The position numbers and the translations under genes are program-made. The notes beneath the pieces are model-generated. The model saw nothing but the letters and a program-made list of their open reading frames with translations. It did no database searches and was not told where the DNA came from. 64,000 bases of DNA from Tubulanus polymorphus (lineage: Eukaryota; Animalia; Nemertea): NCBI RefSeq assembly GCF_964204645.1, contig NC_134034.1, positions 13,777,062 through 13,841,061 of the forward strand. Reading direction: 5' to 3'. The stretch's first letter is position 1; every line of letters begins with the position of its first letter. Below, piece after piece: positions 3,394-60,597 of the stretch.

Positions 3394-5403
3394 TTTCTAT
3401 TTTTCCTGAGGGTTTTAGATAATGACAGTTTGAGAGTAGAGAACGAATAGATCATATATACGTCGCTTCGTTTCACGTGTTCCCTGTCATTATCAGCTAG
3501 TCAGGCGCCATGTCGTGGTGGGATTATTACTGGGGTAACGATAGCGCTGAAGCCCTTTACGAGAAAGATCCAAGTTCATACTATAGAATATCTTTCGAAC
3601 TGTTCGCCGACTACGTGAGTGTCGGGAACCACTATGCGCTCTATCTACTGGTGTATCCGCTGGGAAGCGTAGTCAACTTTCTGACGATCATTCTGCTGAT
3701 CAAGTGTCGCAGATATCAATCGGTTCGCTACACGTTCCCGTATCTGATCACACTGGCGACCTCGGATCAACTAGTCGTGTTGTTCGGGTTGGAGTATTTC
3801 AACAGTTGGTTTATACAGTTCGTCACCTACTACCTACAATTCTACCGAGACGAATGCCGATTCGAAACAGACGATACGTGTCCGTTCAAGGGATACTCCG
3901 AGTTTTTCGACAGGCTGACGATGGAGTGGATCCCGTTTTGTTTCATAAAGAATCTACTGTTCAACCAATCAATCGCTCTATCAAACTATATCGTAGTAGT
4001 AATATCAGTGGAGAGATTCCTGTCAATTCGATTCCCATTTTTTCACCGAACCCATTTCACTCTGACCAGGCGTAAATTCACCGTATTGTTTGTCGTTTTA
4101 TGGGTTTGTCTGATAAATATCGACTCATCTATAGTCGACAATAAAGTTCGACGTGTCGCCCACGAGGTTTGGGTCGACATGCCGACGAACGACAGCGACG
4201 ATCAGTTCGAGACGATGACCACGACCGGAGGGGTATCGTACGTGTTTTTCTGTTTTAATATTCTCGGTTCTACCGGTGATTACCTTTCCTATCAGAACGT
4301 TTACCAGCACGCGATCATAATCATCAAAGAAATTCTTCAAAACTTTCTACCCACACTGGTCATCGTGATAACATCGGTACTAACCGCCAGGGCGCGCAGC
4401 GGTCGGGCCTCGCTTGCCAATGCTGGTGCGAGTGGTCACCAGCATGTATCGGCCAGTAAGACACTTATAGCTGTTGTTATGGTCTACATAGTGCTGGTGG
4501 TGCCCTACTCCGTAACCACAATCATGGCCAGTGTACCTTTGTTTTTGGCGAAATATTTCGACATCAACTTCGTCACAGGTGGCGAGACGATCGGAGACTT
4601 TTACGTATCCACCCTTTGGGCGAAGCTCCAACTTTTGCTGATTATCCCTCGTGAGCTTTTGTTCTGCGTGAATTTTTTCATATACGTCGGAACTTTGCGA
4701 GTTTTCAGACGACAGTTCGTTCGGGTATTCACCTGTCGGAGAATTCGACGTCACGCCCGAGCCGGGATACCGAAAATCTAATCATCCCAGACCAGTAGCG
4801 ACTTTCTAGAGATTTGATGGACGCCAAATGTCGTCTTAGTTCATATCATCAGTGCCCACTGCTGCATAACTAATCGCACGTGATGTCAGGACCTCCTCAC
4901 TGCCAGTCACCCACATTCTATAAAACCTATGTATCACTAATAAAGTTTCTGTTAACTCGGTTTCGAATCAGTAAAATGTAAGGACAGATAGTAGCCTGCT
5001 TTTGACCTTTCCGTATCGTGTTGGCAAAAAAAACAGACAAAAAATGTCCGAAATAAAAATACAGTTACATCGAAATCAATTCGTGTTTGGCTCCTTAAAC
5101 TGTACAGTGCTTATCCCACATAGATCCTACACTATTTGTATATCTGATGAAGCTTCTATATGCATTAGTTATAGTTAACATATATAACTGTGTTTGTAAT
5201 TCTGTTACCCAAATCTCGGCAAGTTACATAGATACCTTACGAAAACATTCAGATTAACATCAAGCAAGAAAACCTAGAGAGAAACTGTGCGTGGGTAAAA
5301 ATACATCGCAACTATAAAACATACTTTGAAACATACCTTCACTGAAAGAAAATACTGCAAGCATGGTGACCAGAAATGAAATAATCCGTTGAGCCGGTGC
5401 CAT
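629..5403 (-). CDS. Ly6/uPAR (three-finger, Quiver/Sleepless-like) GPI-anchored protein, ~162 aa; exons 5403-5337, 2297-2089, 841-629
   Basis: Phase-consistent GT-AG joins give the signal peptide MAPAQRIISFLVTMLAVFSFSEVVHS, then CYNC...C...C-x5-CVK...RFCGLHC...CCKDQNCN (10 Cys, canonical LU-domain CC-x4-CN end) and a hydrophobic C-terminal GPI-type tail (LLAYPPLLTTFLLLPFL). Confidence 0.85.
3357..3389. repeat. (TA)n microsatellite upstream of the first GPCR
   Basis: Pure TA run read directly. Confidence 0.9.
3510..4781 (+). CDS. Intronless class A (rhodopsin-like) GPCR, divergent peptide-receptor/chemoreceptor-like, 423 aa
   Basis: Seven hydrophobic segments; TM1 GSVVN, TM2 LATSD, TM3 Cys and ERF (DRY equivalent) followed by SIRFP, TM6 Pro, TM7 NFFIY, helix 8 FRRQF. 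Confidence 0.9.
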   Translation: MSWWDYYWGNDSAEALYEKDPSSYYRISFELFADYVSVGNHYALYLLVYPLGSVVNFLTIILLIKCRRYQSVRYTFPYLITLATSDQLVVLFGLEYFNSWFIQFVTYYLQFYRDECRFETDDTCPFKGYSEFFDRLTMEWIPFCFIKNLLFNQSIALSNYIVVVISVERFLSIRFPFFHRTHFTLTRRKFTVLFVVLWVCLINIDSSIVDNKVRRVAHEVWVDMPTNDSDDQFETMTTTGGVSYVFFCFNILGSTGDYLSYQNVYQHAIIIIKEILQNFLPTLVIVITSVLTARARSGRASLANAGASGHQHVSASKTLIAVVMVYIVLVVPYSVTTIMASVPLFLAKYFDINFVTGGETIGDFYVSTLWAKLQLLLIIPRELLFCVNFFIYVGTLRVFRRQFVRVFTCRRIRRHARAGIPKI

Positions 5404-9900: not shown

Positions 9901-12174
9901 TTGTGGACCTTAAATTCTTGACTCCAAAAAACTGGGCCTTTTAACAAAAGATTTATTTTGCAAGGCGTGCACTAACGTTAGCGATTTATTCGTGCATGTT
10001 TATATATATTTGTGGATATAGGTCTTTGTGTATTAGCTTACGCTATACTCAGGTCTTCGGGCATAATACTTGCTGCGCATTGTGAATACACGGTGGTAAT
10101 ATTTTTTTTTAGGAAGACTGTATTTAACTGCAGTTGATAGAAGATAAAGCGGATTGGTCCATTCGTTATTGCTTGGAATTCGTGATCAGTGAGGTAGGAT
10201 ATTTTGAACTATTTACTAAGGTCTCGCATGAATTATATAGATTTCATCGATGATTTTCGAAAGTGATGTTTGGTAATACAACTTTTGTCATAGATCATCC
10301 ATGCAAACCTTGGGAATCAGTAGGAACTGAATCAGCCTGATGGGTAAACAATAGTATACTATTTAGCCTATTACTTAATTTGCTTATCATGGTTAACCAT
10401 TCGGTACATTGGGTTCCTAGTTTTGACTGGTCTGATGCATTTGAAAATTTGTGTTATCATCAAGTCCAAAAGCACTCAGGCTAGCCTTGAACCGAGATAA
10501 GAACACCGACTTAACAACGCTGGCCTTGTCTTATGATAAGGCTTACGCTTGGATAAGGTTCCGAGCAAACAAAAATGTTTGTCGAAATATTTAATTCGTT
10601 TGATATATTTCAGTTAAACAGCATGGATGTAACCGGTCAAACAGGCGGTGGTGGTGGTTTCGTTAATACGGTAACCCCGACCATCGCAGCCGACAACCAA
10701 ACCGCCGACGCCCTGTACGACTTCTACGAGATTTGCGTCGCCTACGTTGCGCCGATATTCTATATCCAAGGAATCGTCGGTAACGTTTTCGCGCTGGTCA
10801 TCTTCTTCAAAAGTAAAACCGTCCGGCGCCGAGAGATCGTCGATTTCCTAATACCGCTAGCATTGGCCGATTTGACTTTCTTGATTTTCGGCGCTTTGAT
10901 CAACTGGTTACAACGCGACATGCCTCACGCCGTCGGTGGAATCGAAGGCATCAAAACGAACATACTAGCGACACCTGGCGCCTGCAAGGTGCTCTCCTAT
11001 ATCGGCTGGGTCGGCATCGCTGCTGGTAATTGGATCGTCGTTTTGTTGACATGGGAACGCGCGGTCGTCATGAGCGCTAAACACGCGTTGCTATGGTTAT
11101 CGCGGGCCAAACGGCTCGTAGCCCTAGCCGCTGCTGTAATACTCAGCGCTCTGTTGCTCATCCCGGTCCTGGTCAAGTACGATATAGACGACGACGGGAT
11201 CTTCATCGAATGCGACTACATGGTATACGGTAAACTTACCGACAACTTACTCACCTACCTAGGTCCGACTTTGATCAACGTGTTCGTGTTCATGGTGCCC
11301 CTAGCGGCCGTCTGGATTGCCAATACGATATTGGTCGTTCATTTATGCAAGAAACGACGGCTAGAGGGCGCTGAAGAGGACGATATAGCCGAATTGACGC
11401 GACGAGACGAAGAGAGAAAACTGGTCATTCAACTGATCGCGATTCCGACGATGTTTCTAATTTTCACCACTCCCCCGACGATATTCGGAATCTGGTTCGA
11501 TTGGCTCCAGTACGAAATCGATGTAAACAACAGATCCGACCTTGCCGCACTGGATACCCTCCATATCGAAGGTCTCAACGATTTCTTTTCGCGACTGGTC
11601 TACATAAATAACTGTCTGAATTGGATCGTCTATATCGCCTCGTTGAAATGGTTCCGCGAAGAGGCGAGGAACATCTGTTGCCCGGCTAAACGGTCGCGCA
11701 ACGACAGCGAACTAGCCGCGCCTCTTGTCAGAGACGACGCAGAAATAACAAGCTGAAATATCGAATTTCCTTCCACTCGAAATATCGAATTTTACTTGAG
11801 AAACCGTATGTTATAATCTTTGAAATATCCATTCGCAATGCCGTATTTTCACTTGAAATATCGAATTTTCTGATTCGCAGTCGCTGTATGATTCAATTTA
11901 TGTATATATAAACCACAAATAATTAATCATAATAATACCCAATTGGTGCTATATCTGATTATAATAAGTACAATGTATCCATATAACCATATCCTCCGCG
12001 CAAGGGATTTGAGCCTGATGACATCATGAGACTCGGTCACAGTACAAACCCCTGTCCTAGAGGTAGTCTAAACACGATGTCATCAGGATGTTGGCGACTT
12101 ACCTCGAACGCTGGCTGATCCGGTTGATGTAAGGTGCTTAGATTATCCAAGGGAATTTCTTTATTGATTTCCAT
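6997..12174 (-). CDS. Unidentified ~175-aa acidic/disordered protein with a C-terminal kinase-subdomain-XI-like segment; exons 12174-12103, 9191-8944, 7470-7350, 7083-6997; probable 5'UTR exon ending near 12592
   Basis: Four exons with good acceptors and donors (gtaagt, gtatgt, gtacgt) join in frame (phases 0, 2, 0): MEINKEIPLDNL...ENTETSSLNIEP...KTG-MKNPAFSREK...ILSV-LREIVRKCTNADPMKRPSADEIVHMLKM*. Confidence 0.6.
10623..11756 (+). CDS. Class A GPCR with single coding exon, peptide-receptor/chemoreceptor-like, ~377 aa
   Basis: TM1 GIVGN, TM2 LALAD, TM3 Cys and WERA, TM5 and TM6 Pro, TM7 NNCLNWIVY, helix 8 FREEA. A splice acceptor (tatttcag) just before ATG 10623 favours this start over 10575. 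Confidence 0.9.
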   Translation: MDVTGQTGGGGGFVNTVTPTIAADNQTADALYDFYEICVAYVAPIFYIQGIVGNVFALVIFFKSKTVRRREIVDFLIPLALADLTFLIFGALINWLQRDMPHAVGGIEGIKTNILATPGACKVLSYIGWVGIAAGNWIVVLLTWERAVVMSAKHALLWLSRAKRLVALAAAVILSALLLIPVLVKYDIDDDGIFIECDYMVYGKLTDNLLTYLGPTLINVFVFMVPLAAVWIANTILVVHLCKKRRLEGAEEDDIAELTRRDEERKLVIQLIAIPTMFLIFTTPPTIFGIWFDWLQYEIDVNNRSDLAALDTLHIEGLNDFFSRLVYINNCLNWIVYIASLKWFREEARNICCPAKRSRNDSELAAPLVRDDAEITS

Positions 12175-13957: not shown

Positions 13958-15119
13958 TCCGATAACCGAAGGTGGCCCTCGGAAATCGGACAAAAATAGA
14001 GCCCTAAAAACACAACCGACAGACGAACAGTAACTCGACGAATCCTCACTTGCCACTAGTGGAATCCCCGACTGCCGCAGTAGCGTTATCCTTATCAATT
14101 GTAATTGGTTTGAAAATTGATATGAGTTAATTGTTTCATTGTGTGAATGCGAGTAAAGATTTATCAACTTTTCCAATTCACACGGTTTTTATTCAGACAA
14201 TGAACATGCGTCGGGTCGATATGGCGGCGGTGACATCAGGCTGTTATACGTCAATTTTACAAAAAACCAACATTTTTACATCGATTTCATCCGCTAAGAG
14301 TAAAGCTCACACATCTGTCAGCAGCGCGTATAGATCGCTCGTCAAGGGAAAACAATTTTTCCACCTTTTCGAGCGCTGTAAATGTTAAACGCGTGACTAG
14401 TTAAAAAAGAGTTGTGCGCGATCGAAAAAATGTCGTTGTTGTATTATGAATCGTTAACGGTCGATAATCGAGCACTGAAGTATCGTTCAATTCATCTTTC
14501 GAATCGATCTTTCGATGCTGAACGTGTCGCGAAGCTCGTTATTCGGCGAATTAATGGTCAATTAAACCGTTAATTTGTCGTTTGAAACATGTTCAGGTAC
14601 TTATACACGTGTAACGCCGTGTATTGAGCGCGCGCAGCAGCGTCCAACAGTTTTAACCCTTCCAATGAAAATACGAGAGAAATCCCGCAATCAATCAAGC
14701 CAAAGATGAAAAGTTTTATTTCCAGCAATTTTCCGACTAGTATATTAATTGAATACTATAGATCTTTAGCCGAATCCAGAGTTTAGTTCTTGAGTATATG
14801 CATCTTATACGCGGGGATATTGTGTATTTTCTCGACTTCTCAATGAAAACTGCGGATATGTGGCATATAGTCAAATTTATCATGGGTAGAGCCTACATAC
14901 AATGCGGCGTGGAACTTGTTCCACTCAGAGTGGAATAAAATCTACTCAACTCTTCAAGTGGGTCCAAAATCATGATGAAAAACACTGCAGCTGCGAAAAT
15001 GGATCCAGAGTAGAATCAAAACTACACAACTGTGGTGGAGCCACCCACACAACACTGTGTCGTAATATTGGGTACAGAGTCAAATTATACACAAAAACAA
15101 CTGTTGAACTTGATCCTCA

Positions 15120-15230
15120 GTCAAATTAAACCCACACAACTGTGGAACTGCGTGCAGGGTCAAATTAAACCCACACAACTGTGGAACTGGGTCTACAGTT
15201 AAATTAAACCCACACACGTGGAACTGAATG
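15120..15230. repeat. ~40-bp minisatellite (gtcaaattaaacccacacaactgtggaactgggtccaga) of a dispersed family; another array at ~41840-42010
   Basis: Same unit in tandem at both sites, with fragments near 15780, 21570 and 51250. Confidence 0.75.
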
Positions 15231-15630
15231 AACCCACAAAAAATGTGGTCCCTTTACGAACACATATATCGACATTAATGAAGTAAAGTGCCATTCACTA
15301 ATAAAACTTCTGTTTGTGACAGCAGAAACAATACATTTCAATCAAACATTATTGAGAAAAACTAAACCCAAGTGTCTTCGGGGGCTGTTTATAATGTCTT
15401 GAGTGGGCTGATATTGTTTGTAGATTACTCTCCACGCTTAACAATAAGACAGATATATAATAGACAGATGCTGAAGTGATTTTGTTTCTCGATATTAATG
15501 GCATCTGGCTGCACGCGTTTATTTATTTAATAAATCTTGAAGAAGACTCGTCGTCCATTTGTTGGTTTTTATCTAACTCAGTCGCTATTGTTTCTGTCTA
15601 TTGTGTTCGGATTTTAGATAGAAATACAGA

Positions 15631-17288
15631 ATGAAGGTAAGTAGTTCGTTCCACTTTATTCTGCGTCACGAACGACTCGAATCTGATCTCATACCAATCA
15701 TAGGCTCTCGTAATAAGAACTCGAGTAACCTTAGTACTGTACTGTGTGATATTCAAATATAGACCACTGCACTCTGTGGAAGTGGGTTCAGGGTCAAATT
15801 AAACCCGCTAAACTGGGTGCAAAATCATATTAAACCCAATCAACCTTTTTTACCAACTCGCCCCTATACAAATTAGTACAGGGTACAAACACTGATTGAC
15901 AGCACTGCCAATTGTACAGTGTATCGATAGTTCAATAATCAATCTTCTATAACAACACCGAAAACCTTGGACCACAGGTTGGGTAAACTAGCATCGTTAT
16001 AGATCAACCACACCCATCAGCCCTTCTACACTATGTGCTTCTTCGTAATAAAAAACTGATCAATTTTTACAGTTTTTTGCCGTGTTATGTCAGTTTTTGC
16101 TGTTTGTATTCGTCGCTGTTCGGTTTACGGTGGCTGTTATGAACTACACGGATATCGGAGATAGTTTAGCGATTTGCCAGGAGCAATGCGCTGTGTTCGA
16201 CTTGAAGTATCCGAACAACCCGGAATTTCTGAGAAACCGCGACTGTAGGATGGTATGTTCACGACAGATCGAGGTGTCCCAGTGGGGCTACAAACCGACC
16301 AATGAAACATGTAGACGAAATATTAGAAGATGCGTTAAATCAATAGGTAGGCCTCGTATATTGAGGAACCCTCCTTTTTTAATAGTGGCGCCTTACTGTG
16401 ATGCAAAGTTAAATCATGGACTCTAAAACGAATCGTTTTAGAGTCCATGGTTTAATGATGCTTCCCATTCGCATTATTGCCCCTATAACTCTAACCAGGG
16501 AAACCCCTATAACTCTAACCAGGGAAACCCCTGTAACTCTTACCAGGGAAACCCCTATAACTCTAACCAGGGAAACCCCTATAACTCTAACCAGGGAAAC
16601 CCCTATAACTCTAACCAGGGAAACCCCTGTAACTCTTACCAGGGAAACCCCTATAACTCTAACCAGGGAAACCCCTGTAACTCTAACCAGGGAAGTGTCT
16701 AACCATGTATCACTCATCTCTCCCTGGGGAGAGTAAAACCCGATTAGCTGCTAGGCGCTCAGGATCCATATATCAGACCAGGTACCCGCATTTACTCCAG
16801 GACGCTACGGTAATGTATACGTGGGTTCGGACCCACGACCTGGCTTCCCGCGAGTTGAACCCTCTATAACCACACAGCCCAGGGCTGAGCCACACCGCTG
16901 CACAAATTAAAACAAAACATATTTGGCTCCATCATCATTCTACGATATAACAATCTCGTGGTCATCCATTTACTAACATCAAATTTCCTAAAATCATCGT
17001 TTTTCGTCAGTGCTCTTTAATTGTTTTAAATGCAGCGATTTGCGAAGATCCAAGCATCAACATCGATTGTGCTGTTTCAAGTTGTTACATGAAAAACTCA
17101 ACGACAAACGAAACAGGATGCACCGGTAAGCCTCGTCCCCGTGACGTCATAGTTTGTTCACAATCTACCCGCGCACTCGTTCAAACTGTGGCAGGGATTT
17201 TACATTGAATTTCTATTAGATAGAAAAATTATGTTTGCTAATCTTTTTGTAATTTTCAGAACCAATCATTTCGAAACAGCTCCAATGA
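15631..17288 (+). CDS. Secreted 10-Cys protein, paralogue 1 (~132 aa); exons 15631-15636, 16073-16346, 17036-17125, 17260-17288
   Basis: ATGAAG|gtaagt first coding exon, hydrophobic signal (MKFFAVLCQFLLFVFVAVRFTVA), mature region CQEQC-x18-CRMVC-x17-C-x6-C-x6-C-x8-C-x4-C-x11-C; all joins GT-AG and in phase; supported by the paralogue. Confidence 0.8.
16480..16693. repeat. 24-bp minisatellite (cccctataactctaaccagggaaa), ~9 copies, intronic
   Basis: Direct tandem repeat; explains the repetitive ORFs at 16409-16736. Confidence 0.95.
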
Positions 17289-17643
17289 TCAGAGTGACGG
17301 ATAGGCATTCGCCCTACCAGAAAATGGCTGCCCGCGTAGATACCCCCCAAATCTTTACTTCATTACTTATATTTACCATAACTTAGTCACAAAACGATAT
17401 TCAACGCTGTCATTGAAACAAAAGCTAATTGGAAATCGGTTTATCGTCGCTGTAATTCCATCGGTGACGTCATAGGTGGATTCAAGGAAGATAGCATCAT
17501 CAATTTGGAAAATACGATGAGTCTTAAACATGAAAACTTAAAAAGAAAACATTTCATGAAATCTTTCGTTAGTAAGCGGTATAGTATCAAAAAGGAAAAT
17601 TAAGAACGAAAAACTTTGATTCCATTTTCTATTTTTGATTCCA

Positions 17644-18609
17644 GTGATGACGTGTTTTAAGGAGGCGGTGATGACGTGTTTTAAGGAGGCGGCGATGACG
17701 TGTTTTAAGGAGGCGGCGATGACGTGTTTTAAGGAGGCGGCGATGACGTGTTTTAAGGAGGCGGCGATGACGTGTTTTAAGGAGGCGGCGATGACGTGTT
17801 TTAAGGAGGCGGCGATGACGTGTTTTAAGGAGGCGGCGATGACGTGTTTTAAGGAGGCGGCGATGACGTGTTTTAAGGAGGCGGCGATGACGTGTTTTAA
17901 GGAGGCGGCGATGACGTGTTTTAAGGAGGCGGCGATGACGTGTTTTAAGGAGGCGGCGATGACGTGTTTTAAGGAGGCGGCGATGACGTGTTTTAAGGAG
18001 GCGGCGATGACGTGTTTTAAGGAGGCGGCGATGACGTGTTTTAAGGAGGCGGCGATGACGTGTTTTAAGGAGGCGGCGATGACGTGTTTTAAGGAGGCGG
18101 CGATGACGTGTTTTAAGGAGGCGGCGATGACGTGTTTTAAGGAGGCGGCGATGACGTGTTTTAAGGAGGCGGCGATGACGTGTTTTAAGGAGGCGGCGAT
18201 GACGTGTTTTAAGGAGGCGGCGATGACGTGTTTTAAGGAGGCGGTGATGACGTGTTTTAAGGAGGCGGTGATGACGTGTTTTAAGGAGGCGGCGATGACG
18301 TGTTTTAAGGAGGCGGCGATGACGTGTTTTAAGGAGGCGGCGATGACGTGTTTTAAGGAGGCGGCGATGACGTGTTTTAAGGAGGCGGCGATGACGTGTT
18401 TTAAGGAGGCGGCGATGACGTGTTTTAAGGAGGCGGTGATGACGTGTTTTAAGGAGGCGGTGATGACGTGTTTTAAGGAGGCGGTGATGACGTGTTTTAA
18501 GGAGGCGGTGATGACGTGTTTTAAGGAGGCGGTGATGACGTGTTTTAAGGAGGCGGTGATGACGTGTTTTAAGGAGGCGGTGATGACGTGTTTTAAGGAG
18601 GCGGTGATG
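17644..18609. repeat. 24-bp satellite (atgacgtgttttaaggaggcggyg), ~40 copies
   Basis: Near-perfect tandem array with one C/T variable position occurring in blocks. Confidence 0.97.
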
Positions 18610-19369
18610 CTAGTGCTGAATCATACACAGCTTCTGTGCTGAGGTGTGGTGCCGTCGTTCCCTTGCCAAAAACGGGGATCTGGACAATGATGACCAACTA
18701 TACTGAGTGTTATCGCTCAATGTCAGTAACAGCGACGGTCTGACAATAAAATCTCTTGTCGCGTTGACGCAATCCTGCGGAAATAATAAGATTTTCATGC
18801 CACCCGATCACACTCTCTTTTACAAATCAGTCCTTCATCCTCTATTTTTAATGTATAAGCTGTTTTTTCATTAATTCTGTAGAGATTTCATATCAAAGCA
18901 TATATCATATATCATATATCATATATCATATATCGATGATAATTTATTCATTCGTTTGTCGAAGATAAAAATTTCTTAGCGAGAAATAATATACGCATGA
19001 AATTCAAATAATGTGATCGCTTCGTCTCCAAAGAGTCTCCTTAATCCCACTTCAAAAAGCCCTCCAAATCGATTCGCGAGATAATCAATTCGTAAAAGCG
19101 AGTCGAGTGTGGGCCAATTTGAAACTTATTTTTTTCTATAGAAACAAATTGATATAATTATGTCTACGCGCGAGTGTGCAATAAAGGATATATCCGAATA
19201 TTCTGTCGATTGCGACCATCTGGCGTTCAGCTAATTGAAAGTATATTTATACAAACCACGCGTCGCGTCGCCGTCACAATTATTCAAAAACTATACTCGA
19301 AAAGTTACTCGCCGAGACTAATATATCTATAATACACAAACAGCGCGGTAAAAAAAACCTTGGACCCAG

Positions 19370-22073
19370 ATGAAGGTAAGCCATTTACTTGGATATTATA
19401 AACACAGAGGTAATGGATGGTGATGATATCATTTATTTTCATAAGGTAGAACTACAAAAATAATCGCCGCGATTTAAATCACTTGAGAAAATAAAATTCA
19501 TGTTTTTTTTCTAAACGAACCACAAAAATTCAGTAGACCTAACCCGCGTCGGACCCGATCAACTCTGATAACGGGTCAACTCAGATGTTCGCTCAAATAA
19601 TTTTACGACACTATTTATGAAATACATAAAATCCAACTGTGATATCACTCATCAAGTTGGACACATTTTTACGCATAAAAAAGATCCGACTTCACCGCGG
19701 AGTCCACTGTGATTGAATTAAGCCAATTCTATGAATACAATTTTAAGTTCGGATTTAAAACAACGTCACTTAATGAACGAGGAATGGAATTCAATCGACC
19801 AGGTGCATGAAATATAAAAGTCTCCAGCCACAAACGAGTTTAGGAGTCTGATGTAATCTTGAAGCGCTAATCGAAGAGATCCTGTATAAATGGGTGCGTC
19901 TATATAGTTTTTACCGATCTTCAACTCATGTAAACTTTGAATAATAATAATTTCAACTTTCAACAAGGCGAGAGCGTTTTCTGTTCAATCGAATTCGATA
20001 GACATTTTTTTTAGAAAGATGGTTGTTTTCAAATTTTAAAATAAGGAATTTTCACTCTTAGCTTTTAGGTTTTAATTTGATTTCACTCGGTCCATTGACC
20101 CACCACCAACAGGTAACGAAACAGAGGATTGAGTTTTGAAATCGAAGTTACATGATTTGTATTAGATAATAACATAAAGCACATGATTGGAATTTACGAC
20201 GGTTTCTGGATTAGCCACATGGAACTGCGACCCTTATTATGAAAATATTACTCTCACCATGGTTTTCAGGTAACTCTATATGAAAATCTGACCACGTATG
20301 GCGCACCCTATACATCCCAAGACTTACCAACGAAAAATGTTCATGGGGTCAGATTCTAAGTCTTCTGCTGTGTATTATGTCGATAAGTCTAATCATAATA
20401 CCATCGGAACCATCTGTCAATAAATGTTAAATGTAAATATCGCATATTTGCGAAGGAATCAACTGGATAATATGGCACTGCTTGGATTATAAAAAAAACG
20501 CACATATAGGTGTGCCTACCACCATAGAGCGAGTAAATGCGGGCTAATGATTATCAGTGTCCGCTCAAAATTAACCATCTAATTCCTCTAGAACGGTTTT
20601 GAAAATAATTTCTGGGGCCGAAAGGGGACGATTAAGAGAAGTGACAGTGAAATTACGTCTCACCGGGGTCGAACCCGGGTATTGTACGTGGACAGCAAGA
20701 GTGCTAGCCAGTAGACCAATAGAACTCCACTTGGCCTGTGGTTGTCCTGTATGCGCAACACCATCTTGCTTCTTGTAAAGGCAAGTGATCAAAATTAGAT
20801 TTCCTCTCGACGCACGAGCAAACAGCTGATCTACCGTTTATTTCGCATCGATTCGCTCAGAAACATGTTTGCACATTGTATCATATGATATCTACTAGTT
20901 TACTCAAACTATTTATCACATGCTCACAAAGTGTTTGAGCCGATCGCTGGAGACAATCTCACGCACAAGTTTTTGAAGAGATAAGTTGTGAAGTTTTCTC
21001 TACTTTTCAACCTTAAGTTTTTCTCAGTATATGCGTAATCATAACTGCAGCAGCATCGAAAGAGAAAACCGCGGTGTCGGATTGGACATGCGTCCGTCTG
21101 GTACCGTGATAACCTATCACGCGTTTTCCGTGAAATACATTTAAACTTAAACTTGAACCATTAACTTCAACCGCTGCGCGAACAGGACAAACACTGGACA
21201 GATAAAAAGATTTTATCTTGATTTCAGATGGCAGCCATGTCGTTAACGGTCGCGTTCCTAATGATGACCGTTCTGTACTCGTCCGCTCTCGATACGTATG
21301 AAGGCATCACTGAAGCCAACATGAATACATGCGGCAACACGTGCTCTGATTCGGATATTCAAACGGATTTGCACGAAAATTCACAAAAAAATCGCGACTG
21401 TCGTTCATTGTGTCACCAAATTTTACTATTTTCTGAAAACGAAATCGTCGTTAAGGCTGTTTGCAATTACAGCTTGAATAAATGTTCCGTTTCGCTTGGT
21501 AAGTAAAGAGAAAATCATTAAAGATGGATTCTAATGAAGCACAACAGTAGAATCAATGAACCCGGTGTCAAATAAACCCACACAACTTTAGAAAAACTAA
21601 ACATCTAGCTTTAAATCAAATTCAAAAATGATTTTTAGAAAAGTGCTTATTTTTGTCCAGGTTTTGTTGCCTTTTGGTCATTTTCATTCCATTCATTAGA
21701 ATTCAACTTCTAAACACAAACAAGCTTCGTGAATTCGTCAAACTAACATCGATTTTTTCACATTTTATGCATTTTCTAATTTTTCAGAACTATGTAATAA
21801 TTGTCCTCGTGAGAACTGTAGAGTCACCGACTTCCGGAAAAACACTACGAATTGTAACGACGAGGTGAGTTCAAAAAGTTTCAATCACCAAACTGTGATT
21901 ACTTGGAGAAGTCAAACATTTAACAGTAGTTCCCATATAATTCTCTATTCTATTCCTGAGTTCTGTAGCCGCGCCCTTGATATTCAATATCGAGACAGAT
22001 AAAAATATACCAGAAATGAGACGAAAACAACGTTGGTTTTTTGTTCTCTATTTAGATGCACGATGACGCCTGA
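19370..22073 (+). CDS. Secreted 10-Cys protein, paralogue 2 (~123 aa); exons 19370-19375, 21228-21498, 21788-21864, 22056-22073
   Basis: Same ATGAAG|gtaag first exon, signal peptide MKMAAMSLTVAFLMMTVLYSSA, mature region CGNTC-x18-CRSLC-x16-C-x6-C-x6-C-x2-C-x4-C-x11-C; shares NRDCR and the phase-1 second intron with paralogue 1. Confidence 0.8.
20656..20725 (-). pseudogene. Degenerate tRNA (Asp-like) or tRNA-derived SINE head
   Basis: Minus strand has an A-box-like TGGTCTACTGG and T-arm CCGGGTTCGACCCCGG at tRNA spacing, but acceptor and anticodon stems pair poorly. Confidence 0.5.
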
Positions 22074-22289
22074 ACAACGACTGATGAATTATTCAAACGA
22101 TATAGAAGAAACGGACATCATCCTGAATCTCAAATTTACACGTGATAAAACTCAAAGACATTAAATTCATTCATTCACTGCATCTTTTTCATTCGCTTTG
22201 ATTTTTCTGCCAGAAAAACTTTCTAGAATCGTTTTGTGAATCAAACAAAAAGAAGCAAATATTCAGTACAAGAGTTTGATAAATCTAGG

Positions 22290-23041
22290 CTCTGTCTCTT
22301 ACTGCGGCAAAGTTAAGACTGGTAAAATTCTACCCCGAGTTAGTGTCAAATACTGAGTAAGAGTTTATGAAATACAGTAGACTCTGTCTCTTACTGCGGT
22401 AAAGTTGAAACTGGTAAAATTCTACCCCGAGTTGGGGTCAAATACTGAGTAAGAGTTTGTGAAATACAGTAGACTCTGTCTCTTACTGTGGCAAAGTTAA
22501 GACTGGTAAAATTCTACCCCGAGTTAGTGTCAAATACTGAGTAAGAGTTTATGAAATACAGTAGACTCTGTCTCTTACTGCGGTAAAGTTGAAACTGGTA
22601 AAATTCTACCCCGAGTTGGGGTCAAATACTGAGTAAGAGTTTGTGAAATACAGTAGACTCTGTCTCTTACTGTGGCAAAGTTAAGACTGGTAAAATTCTA
22701 CCCCGAGTTAGTGTCAAATACTGAGTAAGAGTTTATGAAATACAGTAGACTCTGTCTCTTACTGCGGTAAAGTTGAAACTGGTAAAATTCTACCCCGAGT
22801 TGGGGTCAAATACTGAGTAAGAGTTTGTGAAATACAGTAGACTCTGTCTCTTACTGCGGTAAAGTTGAGACTGGTAAAATTCTACCCCGAGTTGGTGTCA
22901 AATACTGAGTAAGAGTTTGTGAAATACAGTAGACTCTGTCTCTTACTGCGGTAAAGTTGAGACTGGTTAAATTCTACCCCGAGTTGGTGTCAAATACTGA
23001 GTAAGAGTTTGTGAAATACAGTAGACTCTGTCTCTTACTGT
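22290..23041. repeat. 92-bp tandem repeat, ~8 copies, with higher-order variant structure
   Basis: ctctgtctcttactg recurs every 92 bp (22290, 22382, 22474 ... 23026). Confidence 0.95.
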
Positions 23042-23609: not shown

Positions 23610-27149
<3,540 letters not shown>

Positions 27150-27334
27150 TGATCGTTTTACGATTAGTTTCTGGGCGTGAGACGTCAGCTGTTTTATCAG
27201 GCGATTTAAAAGCCTACAAGGATCAAAGTCCTCCAGCACGAATTGAAATACGTGGATTGATTTTTCGCAAGAGGTTCGAGTCCTGGCTCAGGGAACAGCC
27301 TATAATCTCGGCGTCCCTTCAGGATTTTAGAGAA

Positions 27335-27590
27335 TGGGTCCCAAGTGCCTCAGGATTTTAGAGACCTGGTCCTATGTCCCTCGGGATTTTAGAGACCGGG
27401 TGGTCCTATATGTGCCTCGGGATTTTAGTGACCGGATCCTATGTCCCTCGGGATTCTAGAGACCGGGTGGTCCTATATGTGCCTCGGGATTTTAGTGACC
27501 GGATCCTATGTCCCTCGGGATTCTAGAGACCGGGTGGTCCTATATGTGCCTCGGGATTTTAGTGACCGGATCCTATGTGCCTCGGGATTT
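27335..27590. repeat. ~30-35-bp minisatellite (ggtcctatgtscctcgggattytagwgacc) upstream of pip copy A; short 23-bp (~27737-27805) and 20-bp (~28182-28270) tandem repeats nearby
   Basis: Tandem units read directly, with alternating variants. Confidence 0.85.
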
Positions 27591-28353
27591 TAAAGTAGCG
27601 AAGCTCGGTAAAGTTTGGTCCGTAAATATTTTATCAAGTTGAGAATCATGGAAACTCGGTTTATACGTCGTCACGTCACGTGTCTCCCACTGAGATGGAG
27701 TTGCGAAACATGATCGCTAACCGTGGTGTCCTCAGTCTACAAGGGGGTGACCATTCTACCTACAAGGGGGTGACCATTCTACCTACAAGGGGGTGACCAT
27801 TCTACTCCTTTTCCCTAGAAATTGAACATCCAAAACATATATACGGTAAAACTATATACGGTAAAAAAAAATTTCGCTTTTATTTCTTAATTTTTCACAT
27901 TATATGTATATATATATGTATATATATATGTTTACATGTACTGAGTACACGGGAATAAATAAAATACAGATATTATTTTTTCATTTTTCCATTTATAGAA
28001 TAAATTTAGCTTAGTTTATAGAGTCACAGTGAAACCAGACGCGTTTCACAAACAAAAACAGGATGAATATCTTAAAGATGTTCATAATCAACCATCAAAT
28101 ATGATAGAATTAAGTTAAGTCACTTCAGAGACTGAGCCAATCTTAATGAGTAAAACGATTCGATAAAAAGAGAATTTGATAACTCCAATACACTCTCAAT
28201 GACTCCAATACACTCTCAATGACTCCAATACACTCTCAATGACTCCAATGGACTATCGTTGACTCCAATAGACTCTTGATGGACCGCGCCCCATCACAAA
28301 CACCTCCTCATTCTAAATCATGCCATTTTAGAAAATTGAATATTTTTCAGCAC

Positions 28354-31441
<3,088 letters not shown>

Positions 31442-57093: not shown

Positions 57094-58059
57094 AAATCAT
57101 AATAACCTACTAAATGTGCTCTGTTACTAGTTTAAAAGCCAGTCAAACTGATTTTATCATTCTTAATAATTCATGTATAATGTGGCTGTTGTCTGTTTGT
57201 ATCAGACTTATCTATTTATGTTATATGCGTGCGTTTAGTGAAACTTGCTTAATCTGCATAATTTGGGACCAATGAAATTCATCCGATTTATGAGAAATCT
57301 GGATTAAAGACTAAATGAAAATGATTCCTTCGCACTTAGGGTCACGTGTGGCTTATAGTATGGTCTAGTACATGTATAGATCAGTTGATGTATTCTAAGC
57401 TGGTGTTGATCAGTAAGAGTTTATAGTAAGTGTTTGAGAATGGATCTGCAATCACTGGAACCATCCCCTACTGTAATATAGCCTGTAGATCAGGGGTCAC
57501 TTTCCACGTGACTACACCAGAGAGATTTCTAGGCTTAACGCGTTACAATCATTGAATCATGTACTGATAAATATCATTATCCGAGTATTCCAGGATTTTT
57601 GGTAAAATGTGTTAAATTCCCTGTTACTAACTAATGGGCACTACTAATGGGGGTGGGTCCAGAGAGCGGATTGGTACCTATATGCTAGTCTATCTTCAAT
57701 CTTCTCAGTGGTTTAGCAATTATTTCATGACTCAATCATTATTAGCCAGTTGTCAACAGTGTAATTCTGAATGGTTTCACACGATTTGAAACATATCTAA
57801 TAAAAAGATGTAAATGTATTTCTTATAAATGAAATGTATCTCTTGTCGGGTAATAAATTAAAATATATTATTAGTCATTGTTAAAATTAGCAGCAAGAAA
57901 TAAAGCGTAAAAAATGGGAAAAGTACAATCATTACATTGTATTAAACGAGTTAGTTTGTGTTTTTCTCTTGTCGGGCAAAGTCTGAAGGGAAAGTGTCAG
58001 CCGGGATTCAACCATCGCGCTGGACTCAGCCACTAGACTGGTTGCCGGAATACCTCGAT

Positions 58060-58976
58060 ACTAGACTGGTCGCCTGTCCAATTCGGCGCCACCTGCATAA
58101 CCCTAACCTTAGACTGGTCGCCTGTCCAATTCTGCGCCACCTGCATAACCCTAACCCTAGACTGGTCGCCTGTCCAATTCGGCGCCACCTGCATAACCAT
58201 AACCCTAGACTGGTCGCCTGTCCAATTCTGCGCCACCTGCATAACCCTAACCCTAGACTGGTCGCCTGTCCAATTCGGCGCCACCTGCATAACCCTAACC
58301 CTAGACTGGTCGCCTGTCCAATTCGGCGCCACCTGCATAACCCTAACCCTAGACTGGTCGCCTGTCCAATTCGGCGCCACCTGCATAACCCTAACCCTAG
58401 ACTGGTCGCCAGTCCAATTCGGCGCCACCTGCATAACCATAACCCTAGACTGGTCGCCTGTCCAATTCGGCGCCACCTGCATAACCCTAACCTTAGACTG
58501 GTCGCCTGTCCAATTCTGCGCCACCTGCATAACCCTAACCCTAGACTGGTCGCCTGTCCAATTCGGCGCCACCTGCATAACCATAACCCTAGACTGGTCG
58601 CCTGTCCAATTCTGCGCCACCTGCATAACCCTAACCCTAGACTGGTCGCCTGTCCAATTCGGCGCCACCTGCATAACCCTAACCCTAGACTGGTCGCCTG
58701 TCCAATTCGGCGCCACCTGCATAACCCTAACCCTAGACTGGTCGCCAGTCCAATTCGGCGCCACCTGCATAACCCTAACCCTAGACTGGTCGCCTGTCCA
58801 ATTCGGCGCCACCTGCATAACCCTAACCCTAGACTGGTCGCCAGTCCAATTCGGCGCCACCTGCATAACCCTAACCCTAGACTGGTCGCCAGTCCAATTC
58901 GGCGCCACCTGCATAACCCTAACCCTAGACTGGTCGCCTGTCCAATTCGGCGCCACCTGCATAACCCTAACCCTAG
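58060..58976. repeat. 48-bp satellite, ~19 copies, each with two telomere-like TAACCC units
   Basis: ctagactggtcgcctgtccaattcggcgccacctgcataaccctaacc in tandem. Confidence 0.97.
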
Positions 58977-60597
58977 CTGACTGAAGGTAGAGACCGGTAA
59001 CTAGTCTAACCTCGATAATGAATGGGACGGGCAGCCAGCCAGTCTAGCTAACTGAACGGGCACGACACCCGCTAGACCGGATGCGAAGATCTGCGCCACC
59101 TAGCACTCAGGCTAGTGTGGCAGGCCTTCGAACCATGACTGGTGGAGTCTCAATGCCCGAATCTCTACGGGGGATGATTCAGTCGACCTGAGATAAAGGT
59201 TGTATCAGTGAAAACAGTGGTTCACATCTAGACATAGTAATCCTCTCTTTGTGAATGCCCATTCTCTGGTGGATCGATGCTCGTGGGACAGGGGCGGATC
59301 TATTGAACTAATCTCGTTACATGTATCTGTTGGCAATAGAGTGAAGATGACTCAACTCTGGTCTGAGCATGGACGTGATGGTCTGAGACAACACGGCTTC
59401 TGAAGTACAGAGTAATCTTATAGATAACCAACAAATATTTGTTTCACAGTTTATAACATTTTGTTATTATTTACCCTAAAAGCGATAGCTTTAAGACATA
59501 AGACACAAACCTTTACGCACATAGTCAGTTAGATATATCGTGAATTTCAACCTTACCCCTTAATTTACCGTCATGAAATAACCACATTTGTTAATGCAAC
59601 AAAGAAATCAGTCTTTCAACAGATAAATAGTTCGAGAAATATGATTTCTAGGACCCGGGTTTCATAGACGAAACCGGGAAACTTCAAAGTTAATTCAGCA
59701 TTTTGTTATTCTAGATTTATGTAGACATTTGAAAATAAAATCATTGAATCAAATTCATAATCGCTGAACCGGATCGTACCATGGTCTATGAACACGCGAC
59801 GGTTCTATCAGAACCGGGGAATTTTAAACTTATTCTTTCTCTGAAATGAATTCATGAAATCGATTGCTATTCATCGTTTCGTAGAAGATTCCGGTCACGC
59901 GCGCGCCGCACGAGATGTTAAAATGAACATTTTTACAAGACCTCGAAATAAATGCATATTCACAAAATACAACGCACGAAAAACTGAACAAAATTCCTTT
60001 CCAACTTTTCGTCAAAGTACAAAAGAATCTGCTTTTAGTTGGGCATCATCGTTCAACTTAACACTGAATATTTTTATGACCCTTTATATAAATGAAACAT
60101 ACCGTACATTATCCAATTTGGACATTCTCTGGAATTGCGGAAATAAATAAATTCTTAGGCCTTAGATACAGCACACTCCGCTTAAGTCATATACTTCGGG
60201 ACCTTAAAAATCACAGGGGCTCACAGTTGAAGTTTGGGGCCTGAACTGTGGGTTAGAACTCACCTTGAGATCCCAGTTGGGATGATCTAAACTACAGTTC
60301 ACCCCGAACTTCAAACACAACCCCTGTGGTAAAAATGTGTCTGATTTGAGTGATAACCGAGTTGGATGATATGTATTTCATGAATAGTGTGGCAAAAATA
60401 TTTCAATAAACGTCAAATGAGTCGAACAGTTATCAATCATAGTTGAACGGATCCGGGACTCGATCAAGTGGAGTCTTCTGTAGTTATATACATTATACAA
60501 ATTGTAGATTCTGCGCAGAAATAACACGATGTGAAACCGTGATTTTTCGACGCTTTTCAGCTATGTAAAGATTTCGAAGCGGCCGCAACCGTCGTCT

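Follow-up and report, generated by a model that had tools for sequence, protein, structure and literature searches.

What do two adjacent genes of the palaeonemertean Tubulanus polymorphus encode, given that their predicted products share a strict spacing of ten cysteines (Cys) and little else, and are these products related to anything already described? The two genes lie in a 64-kb stretch of contig 10 of the 268-Mb assembly GCF_964204645.1 (NC_134034.1, positions 13,777,062-13,841,061), referred to below as the window. A first-pass annotation had described them as a tandem pair of secreted proteins with a cysteine framework of no recognised family. To answer the question, we have read the stretch 15400-22300, listed its open reading frames (ORFs) and rebuilt both gene models by script translation of their exon sets. 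We consider it probable, though well short of certain, that these are two much diverged tandem paralogues encoding small secreted proteins with five disulfides, the members of an orphan family that binds an extracellular partner.

Both genes are on the plus strand, 2.1 kb apart, and each has four exons (Table 1): gene 1 (15631-17288) encodes a precursor of 132 residues plus stop and gene 2 (19370-22073) one of 123 residues plus stop. All six introns are bounded by GT...AG, pyrimidine tracts precede the acceptors and the frames are open throughout. As first described, the two genes begin with the same 6-nt coding exon, ATGAAG. The 11-mer that covers this start and its donor, ATGAAGGTAAG (ATGAAG followed by GTAAG), occurs twice in the window, at 15631 and 19370, where 0.05 occurrences are expected; none of 100 shuffles of the window (0/100) gave two matches. 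In gene 1, no in-frame ATG precedes the hydrophobic segment within exon 2, and an upstream start, as provided by the mini-exon, is therefore needed. The ORF list, here too in line with the original description, contains exon 2 alone for each gene (an open frame of 124 residues in gene 1). When the gene 1 model was searched against the window with tblastn, its residues 90-123 mapped to 17023-17124.

Gene 2 is already in NCBI as the "uncharacterized protein LOC141912184" (XP_074659497.1, 121 residues), the only protein given by a word search with its exon 2. Residues 1-90 of this entry are 100% identical to exon 2, and letter for letter the entry equals gene 2 exons 2-4 with a start at the ATG at 21228; three of the four gene 2 exons are therefore confirmed and the mini-exon is not. 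Exon 3 of gene 2 was also matched by the profile search of the genome described below (E 4.4e-11). Gene 1, by contrast with this entry, seems to have no protein annotation.

The relationship between the two genes is clear enough. In blastp, the two gene products are 21% identical (E 1.5e-7), and the global alignment of their mature parts scores 63, as against a mean of -18 and a maximum of 40 in 2000 shuffles (z = 6.4). All ten Cys (10/10) are aligned between the paralogues, while the shuffles never aligned more than eight. Script translation reproduced both of the spacings originally reported, 3,18,3,17,6,6,8,4,11 for mature gene 1 and 3,18,3,16,6,6,2,4,11 for mature gene 2, as well as the NRDCR motif around Cys 3 that is common to the two proteins; gene 1 carries an eleventh Cys within its putative signal peptide. 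Introns 1 and 2 occupy the same alignment position and have the same phase (0 and 1, respectively) in both genes, and intron 3 differs in phase (1 in gene 1, 0 in gene 2). Because significant similarity is here combined with shared introns 1 and 2, a common start 11-mer and same-strand adjacency, the sequences establish that the pair arose by tandem duplication and has since diverged strongly with its Cys scaffold kept. The extent of this divergence is indicated by the identity of the mature parts outside the Cys, which is a mere 12/90 (13%), much as the first-pass annotation had implied in stating that most of the residues between the Cys differ. Any hypervariability of the loops is judged from n = 2 sequences, and the ratio of nonsynonymous to synonymous substitution rates (dN/dS) is uninformative because synonymous sites are saturated at this level of non-Cys identity.

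Both precursors have, after Met-Lys, 18-20 mostly hydrophobic residues (mean hydropathy 2.0-2.6 on the Kyte-Doolittle scale, over residues 4-20). Candidate cleavage sites that align between the two, after TVA and before V in gene 1 and after SSA and before L in gene 2, have small residues at -3 and -1. By rule of thumb, then, each protein has the basic n-region, hydrophobic core and small -3/-1 residues of a classical secretion signal, and the signal peptides claimed for the pair are to this extent borne out. The predicted mature proteins would have 109 residues (12.5 kDa, isoelectric point (pI) 6.4) for gene 1 and 101 residues (11.5 kDa, pI 4.6) for gene 2, with ten Cys in either case. N-x-S/T sequons number four in gene 1 and two in gene 2, one of them lying four residues ahead of Cys 10 in both proteins, and no dibasic site is conserved between the two.

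For the detection of relatives, the queries were the individual exons of gene 1 and, for gene 2, XP_074659497.1; a two-row profile was employed against the PDB, against 1.84 billion representative proteins and against the worm's own genome. Pfam, searched with four exon translations at E up to 10 and with XP_074659497.1 at E up to 1, gave no family above its gathering threshold; a TAP42 row, scoring 15.6-16.6 bits where the cut-off is 26, was taken as chance. Among the PDB chain sequences, which include the nemertean toxin B-IV (1VIB), neither phmmer with XP_074659497.1 nor hmmsearch with the profile found a match at E up to 10. The ESM Atlas likewise held no relative, either by features or by structure. 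Against the 1.84 billion representatives, the HMMER profile returned gene 2 itself and one weak non-self match, XP_046842921.1, which shares N-x-T-C-x6-C-x6-C with the query. We have dismissed this match as chance: its E of 8.6e-4 is summed over four repeats and hhalign gave a probability of 25% over 32 columns. The matched protein is an uncharacterised one of 813 residues from the soft coral Xenia sp., with no Pfam family above cut-off, and is built of four repeats of about 190 residues, each of which opens with that motif.

Known cysteine frameworks fared no better, the spacing being a misfit for the cystine knots of glycoprotein hormones and bursicon, saposin-like proteins, prokineticin and Ly6/uPAR, and equally for the Frizzled cysteine-rich domain, TIL, EGF, insect odorant-binding proteins and phospholipase A2; Pfam agrees. 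Within the 268-Mb genome, these two loci are the only ones found, whether the query was the exon 2 of one or the other gene, the profile or a DNA pattern for C-x3-C...NRDCR-x2-C. A looser DNA pattern for the framework alone (six TGY codons spaced as in exon 2) was abandoned, as its 4935 matches, compared with 657 in the control, were swamped by TGC microsatellites. Protein, profile and pattern searches of the genome thus reveal no further paralogues. As there is no detectable relative outside this genome and there are two members inside it, the pair is, as judged from its sequences, a lineage-restricted (orphan) family of two. The original assignment to a lineage-specific secreted effector family consequently stands in part: no relatives were found and the N-termini are signal-like, but with two members genome-wide this is not an expanded effector family. 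The anatomy of the sequences, their paralogy and the absence of known relatives are direct observations, and by them the ten-Cys framework would define a small family that is new but of a well-known sort, that of the orphan, tandemly duplicated, cysteine-rich secreted proteins of invertebrates.

With respect to the fold, the paired CxxxC motifs had been expected to lie in a helical hairpin, and the low-confidence models that we have obtained fit this. AlphaFold2 predicted for the mature part of gene 2 (with gene 1 exon 2 as the sole other row) helices at 9-21, 33-44 and 52-74 and a small hairpin, at a mean predicted local distance difference test score (pLDDT) of 54, and for the mature part of gene 1 exon 2 alone helices at 6-24, 29-41 and 56-68 (pLDDT 63). 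The two models concur in placing one CX3C on each of helices 1 and 2, in that order, and C5/C6 on helix 3, an arrangement that fits a twin-CX3C hairpin held by two disulfides, with a third helix and then a short four-Cys tail after it. The predicted folds have generic helical matches only, with E of at least 2.1 in Foldseek and Z of at most 5.3 in VIA-align, and the ESM Atlas model (pLDDT 0.40) had no usable neighbour. That the pair matches no known family, as first proposed, is accordingly the common result of Pfam, the PDB, the ESM Atlas, the HMMER profile, Foldseek and VIA-align.

How might such proteins work? Secretion, disulfide formation, the helical hairpin and a binding role outside the cell are the parts that we infer. 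A signal peptide of about 22 residues would be removed to leave a mature part of 101-109 residues (11-12 kDa), whose ten Cys would form five disulfides and which would carry two to four N-glycosylation sequons. The chain would then run through three helices into a short Cys-rich tail: one CX3C pair would sit on helix 1 and the other on helix 2, with C1-C4 and C2-C3 as the predicted staples of the hairpin, while C5 and C6 would sit on helix 3 and C7-C10 in the tail. The most likely mode of action would be the binding of an extracellular partner, since there is no catalytic motif and the presumed rigid disulfide scaffold displays surface residues that differ between the copies. As for the setting, the glandular secretions of the worm (epidermal mucus or proboscis) would be the likeliest. 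A role in these secretions seems plausible by analogy, because those of palaeonemerteans contain orphan cysteine-rich peptides (PMC12846013) and because nemerteans have helical-hairpin toxins (PMC6410017); a signalling role would be no less plausible.

Several points weigh against this explanation. The signal peptides were called by simple rules (hydropathy and the -3/-1 residues) rather than by a trained predictor, and at pLDDT values of 54 and 63 the models are of low confidence, with both the fold and the disulfide pairing unproven. No observation connects the pair with a particular tissue, be it mucus, proboscis or another. The NCBI protein of gene 2 omits the mini-exon, and gene 1 has an extra ATG 133 nt upstream of its modelled start. 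Moreover, gene 1 has no protein counterpart (its exon 2 shares no words with a collection of 15 billion sequences) and neither AATAAA nor ATTAAA occurs in the 700 nt downstream of it, nor is there a canonical poly(A) signal ahead of the minisatellite described below; its 3' end is unconfirmed for this reason. An RNA-oriented search of sequencing runs over 15580-22120 gave three matching runs, of which none (0/3) is on record as RNA. One of them, X1, covers 15300-17640 at an even full depth, as genomic DNA would. The other two, X2 and X3, give in this interval short contigs that run colinear and unspliced across exon-intron borders (in the gene 1 region at 16002-16140, 16274-16444 and 17088-17540); one contig breaks at a GATC, at 16002, and these two runs look like Hi-C-type DNA. 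A search for contigs encoding XP_074659497.1 found none on record. That no RNA run contains a twentieth of the sampled words is at most a faint hint of low expression.

Such facts raise the question of whether gene 1, or both genes, work at all: gene 1 could be a silent, decaying duplicate, or else its mini-exon and last exon could be mis-modelled. Its absence from the collection that holds the NCBI entry for gene 2, the lack of a matching RNA run and of a canonical poly(A) signal, the repeat-laden intron 2 and the 964-bp minisatellite alongside would all be in keeping with this. However, all four gene 1 exons (4/4) are open, each of the ten Cys has been kept while 87% of the other residues differ, every splice site has the canonical form and the two genes have retained the unusual 11-mer at their start. 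Such a pattern is unexpected for a decaying duplicate of the age to which this divergence points. A first coding exon of 6 nt can make gene predictors miss a gene, and this, by our own inference, could explain the missed prediction; gene 1 would then be a fair illustration of how so short an exon hides a gene from annotation. We think it very doubtful that gene 1 or the pair does not work, or that these two exons are wrongly modelled.

A working pair could alternatively consist of peptide toxins or defensive components of mucus or proboscis, directed at prey, predators or microbes by way of their ion channels or membranes. This is the leading idea of the first-pass annotation, which named pheromones, gamete-recognition proteins and antimicrobial proteins as candidates beside toxins. 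Nemerteans do secrete disulfide-rich peptide toxins, among them the helical-hairpin B-neurotoxins of Cerebratulus (PMC6410017), the mucus and proboscis proteomes of palaeonemerteans contain orphan cysteine-rich peptides (PMC12846013), and the pair has the putative signal peptide, the fixed Cys scaffold and the divergent loops of such molecules. Against this stand the want of a match to B-IV, to other PDB chains or to the Pfam toxin families, the presence of two copies only in the genome and the lack of a matching RNA run, hence of any indication that the genes are expressed at the high level customary for toxins. In addition, the mature proteins are longer (101-109 residues), with pI values of 4.6 and 6.4 and N-glycosylation sequons, whereas the characterised nemertean peptide toxins are, so far as is known, basic. 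A toxin role is perhaps the most serious competitor to the broader explanation, and still we find it rather unlikely. Endogenous signals, be they hormones, growth-factor-like ligands or water-borne pheromones, which might act as a pair or through neighbouring orphan G-protein-coupled receptors (GPCRs), would suit small, acidic to neutral products that are predicted to be glycosylated, disulfide-stapled and helical, and that resemble in kind the attractin-type pheromones of Aplysia. Two intronless 7tm_1 genes are indeed found 4-12 kb upstream of the pair and in its orientation, but lophotrochozoan genomes are so rich in orphan GPCRs that their adjacency counts for little. Neither Pfam nor the large profile search detected homology to a known hormone or pheromone family, and conserved dibasic processing sites are lacking; all told, a signalling role strikes us as improbable.

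The reading that we favour, namely diverged paralogues that encode secreted five-disulfide proteins of an orphan family, could be carried a step further. The hairpin with its third helix and four-Cys tail might be a new structural class of nemertean effector, made in glands and serving as a toxin or a water-borne signal, that has arisen, or has diverged beyond recognition, in the Tubulanus lineage; we offer this tentatively and rather doubt it. If the genes are expressed, they would add two more lineage-restricted disulfide-rich secreted proteins to a phylum in which knowledge of protein toxins and signals is scant, and a solved structure could yield a new small disulfide-rich scaffold. Orphan cysteine-rich pairs being frequent in nemerteans, the pair is of modest weight.

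Table 1. Features of the two genes (positions are those of the window).
Feature	Position	Strand	Remarks
Gene 1 exon 1, coding part	15631..15636	+	ATGAAG (Met-Lys); donor GTAAGT
Gene 1 exon 2	16073..16346	+	Remainder of putative signal peptide, Cys 1-6 (twin CX3C, NRDCR, C-x6-C); phase 1 end
Gene 1 exon 3	17036..17125	+	Cys 7-10; two N-x-T/S sequons
Gene 1 exon 4, coding part	17260..17288	+	Nine residues, then TGA; acceptor ttttgtaattttcag
Gene 2 exon 1, coding part	19370..19375	+	ATGAAG; donor GTAAGC; modelled by parallel with gene 1 only
Gene 2 exon 2	21228..21498	+	Putative signal peptide, Cys 1-6; phase 1 end at the same alignment column as in gene 1
Gene 2 exon 3	21788..21864	+	Cys 7-10; joined translation equals XP_074659497.1
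Gene 2 exon 4, coding part	22056..22073	+	Five residues, then TGA; C-terminus identical to XP_074659497.1
Gene 2 candidate polyadenylation signal	22160..22165	+	ATTAAA, 87 nt past the stop codon; consensus match only

The surroundings of the genes are rich in repeats. The minisatellite between them (17646-18609) comprises 964 bp, in 40 copies of a 24-bp unit that are 99% identical, and each unit contains TGACGTG, similar to the core of a cyclic AMP response element (CRE) or basic leucine zipper (bZIP) site; full TGACGTCA palindromes are found inside intron 3 of gene 1, at about 17143, and on the downstream side of this gene, at about 17467. Intron 2 of gene 1 (16406-16850) contains a palindromic element (16415-16450), a tandem repeat of nine 24-bp units (16480-16694) and flanks. 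Over this stretch the word depth in the DNA run X1 is 120-2080, compared with about 25 around it, and a high-copy repeat or transposon family has therefore been inserted there. Upstream of gene 1, at 15069-15226, there is a tandem repeat of four 39-bp units; the unit recurs in gene 2 intron 2 (21567-21593, 89% over 28 bp), probably as a fragment of a dispersed repeat and not as shared regulatory DNA.

Farther off, two intronless genes for rhodopsin-type GPCRs are found on the plus strand at 3510-4781 (423 residues; Pfam 7tm_1, E 1.5e-10) and 10575-11756 (393 residues; E 4.3e-15), and the latter is matched, barely over the cut-off, by the nematode Srw chemoreceptor model too. On the minus strand, the region 25300-30400 has two sets of exon-sized ORFs that are nearly identical (for example, 25327-25626 with 30027-30311, and 23756-24046 with 28502-28789) and that point to the tandem duplication of an alpha/beta-hydrolase gene; on visual inspection it resembles a proline iminopeptidase. 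Finally, 57958-58980 is a long, coding-looking tandem repeat with an open frame on either strand (340 and 309 residues), in a GC-rich stretch with a GC content of 0.49 and a GC skew of -0.20.

It remains to place the pair among systems that are already known. Twin-CX3C alpha-hairpin proteins include the small Tim chaperones, the plant alpha-hairpinins and the scorpion kappa-hefutoxins. With these the pair has in common the arrangement C-x3-C, spacer, C-x3-C and the expected stapling of antiparallel helices by two disulfides, but they are either much shorter or mitochondrial and without a signal peptide, their spacers are of 10-16 residues as against 18 in the pair, and they are without its further six Cys. 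The small Tim proteins in particular are set apart from the pair, twin CX3C notwithstanding, by its hydrophobic, signal-like N-termini and its lack of a Pfam match. Because neither Pfam nor the large profile search detected homology, we have treated the twin CX3C of the pair as a convergent structural motif and not as a sign of membership. The attractins of Aplysia, like the predicted products of the pair, are secreted helical proteins of a lophotrochozoan that are small and acidic, N-glycosylated and stapled by disulfides, but they have six Cys in about 58 residues at another spacing; the likeness is one of kind only, with no homology detected by Pfam or the large profile search.

Nearer to hand are the B-neurotoxins of Cerebratulus lacteus (B-II and B-IV, or nemertide beta; 1VIB), which come from the same phylum and are secreted, as is predicted of the pair. 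The B toxins are strongly basic and are not known to be glycosylated. B-IV is a disulfide-stapled helical hairpin, and the B toxins have 55 residues with six or eight Cys (PMC6410017). In the models, each CX3C pair of the Tubulanus proteins similarly lies in one arm of a predicted helix-loop-helix; these proteins differ, however, in having 101-109 residues, ten Cys, pI values of 4.6 and 6.4, sequons, a third helix and a Cys-rich tail. With no sequence similarity at E 10 among the PDB chains and with a different mature length and Cys count, the pair is not to be classed with B-II and B-IV. A further comparison is with the palaeonemertean Cephalothrix cf. simula, whose mucus and proboscis contain cysteine-rich peptides that have no UniProt match and have homologues only in a sister species; the two frameworks assigned among them have six Cys, and two peptides fall outside the known conotoxin frameworks (PMC12846013). 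The Cephalothrix peptides have other Cys frameworks than the pair and were detected as proteins, while the ten-Cys pair is known from its genes alone. Nevertheless, they come from a related worm and share with the pair a signal peptide (predicted in the pair), several Cys and the lack of a UniProt match, and lineage-restricted cysteine-rich secreted peptides of this sort are common in nemerteans.

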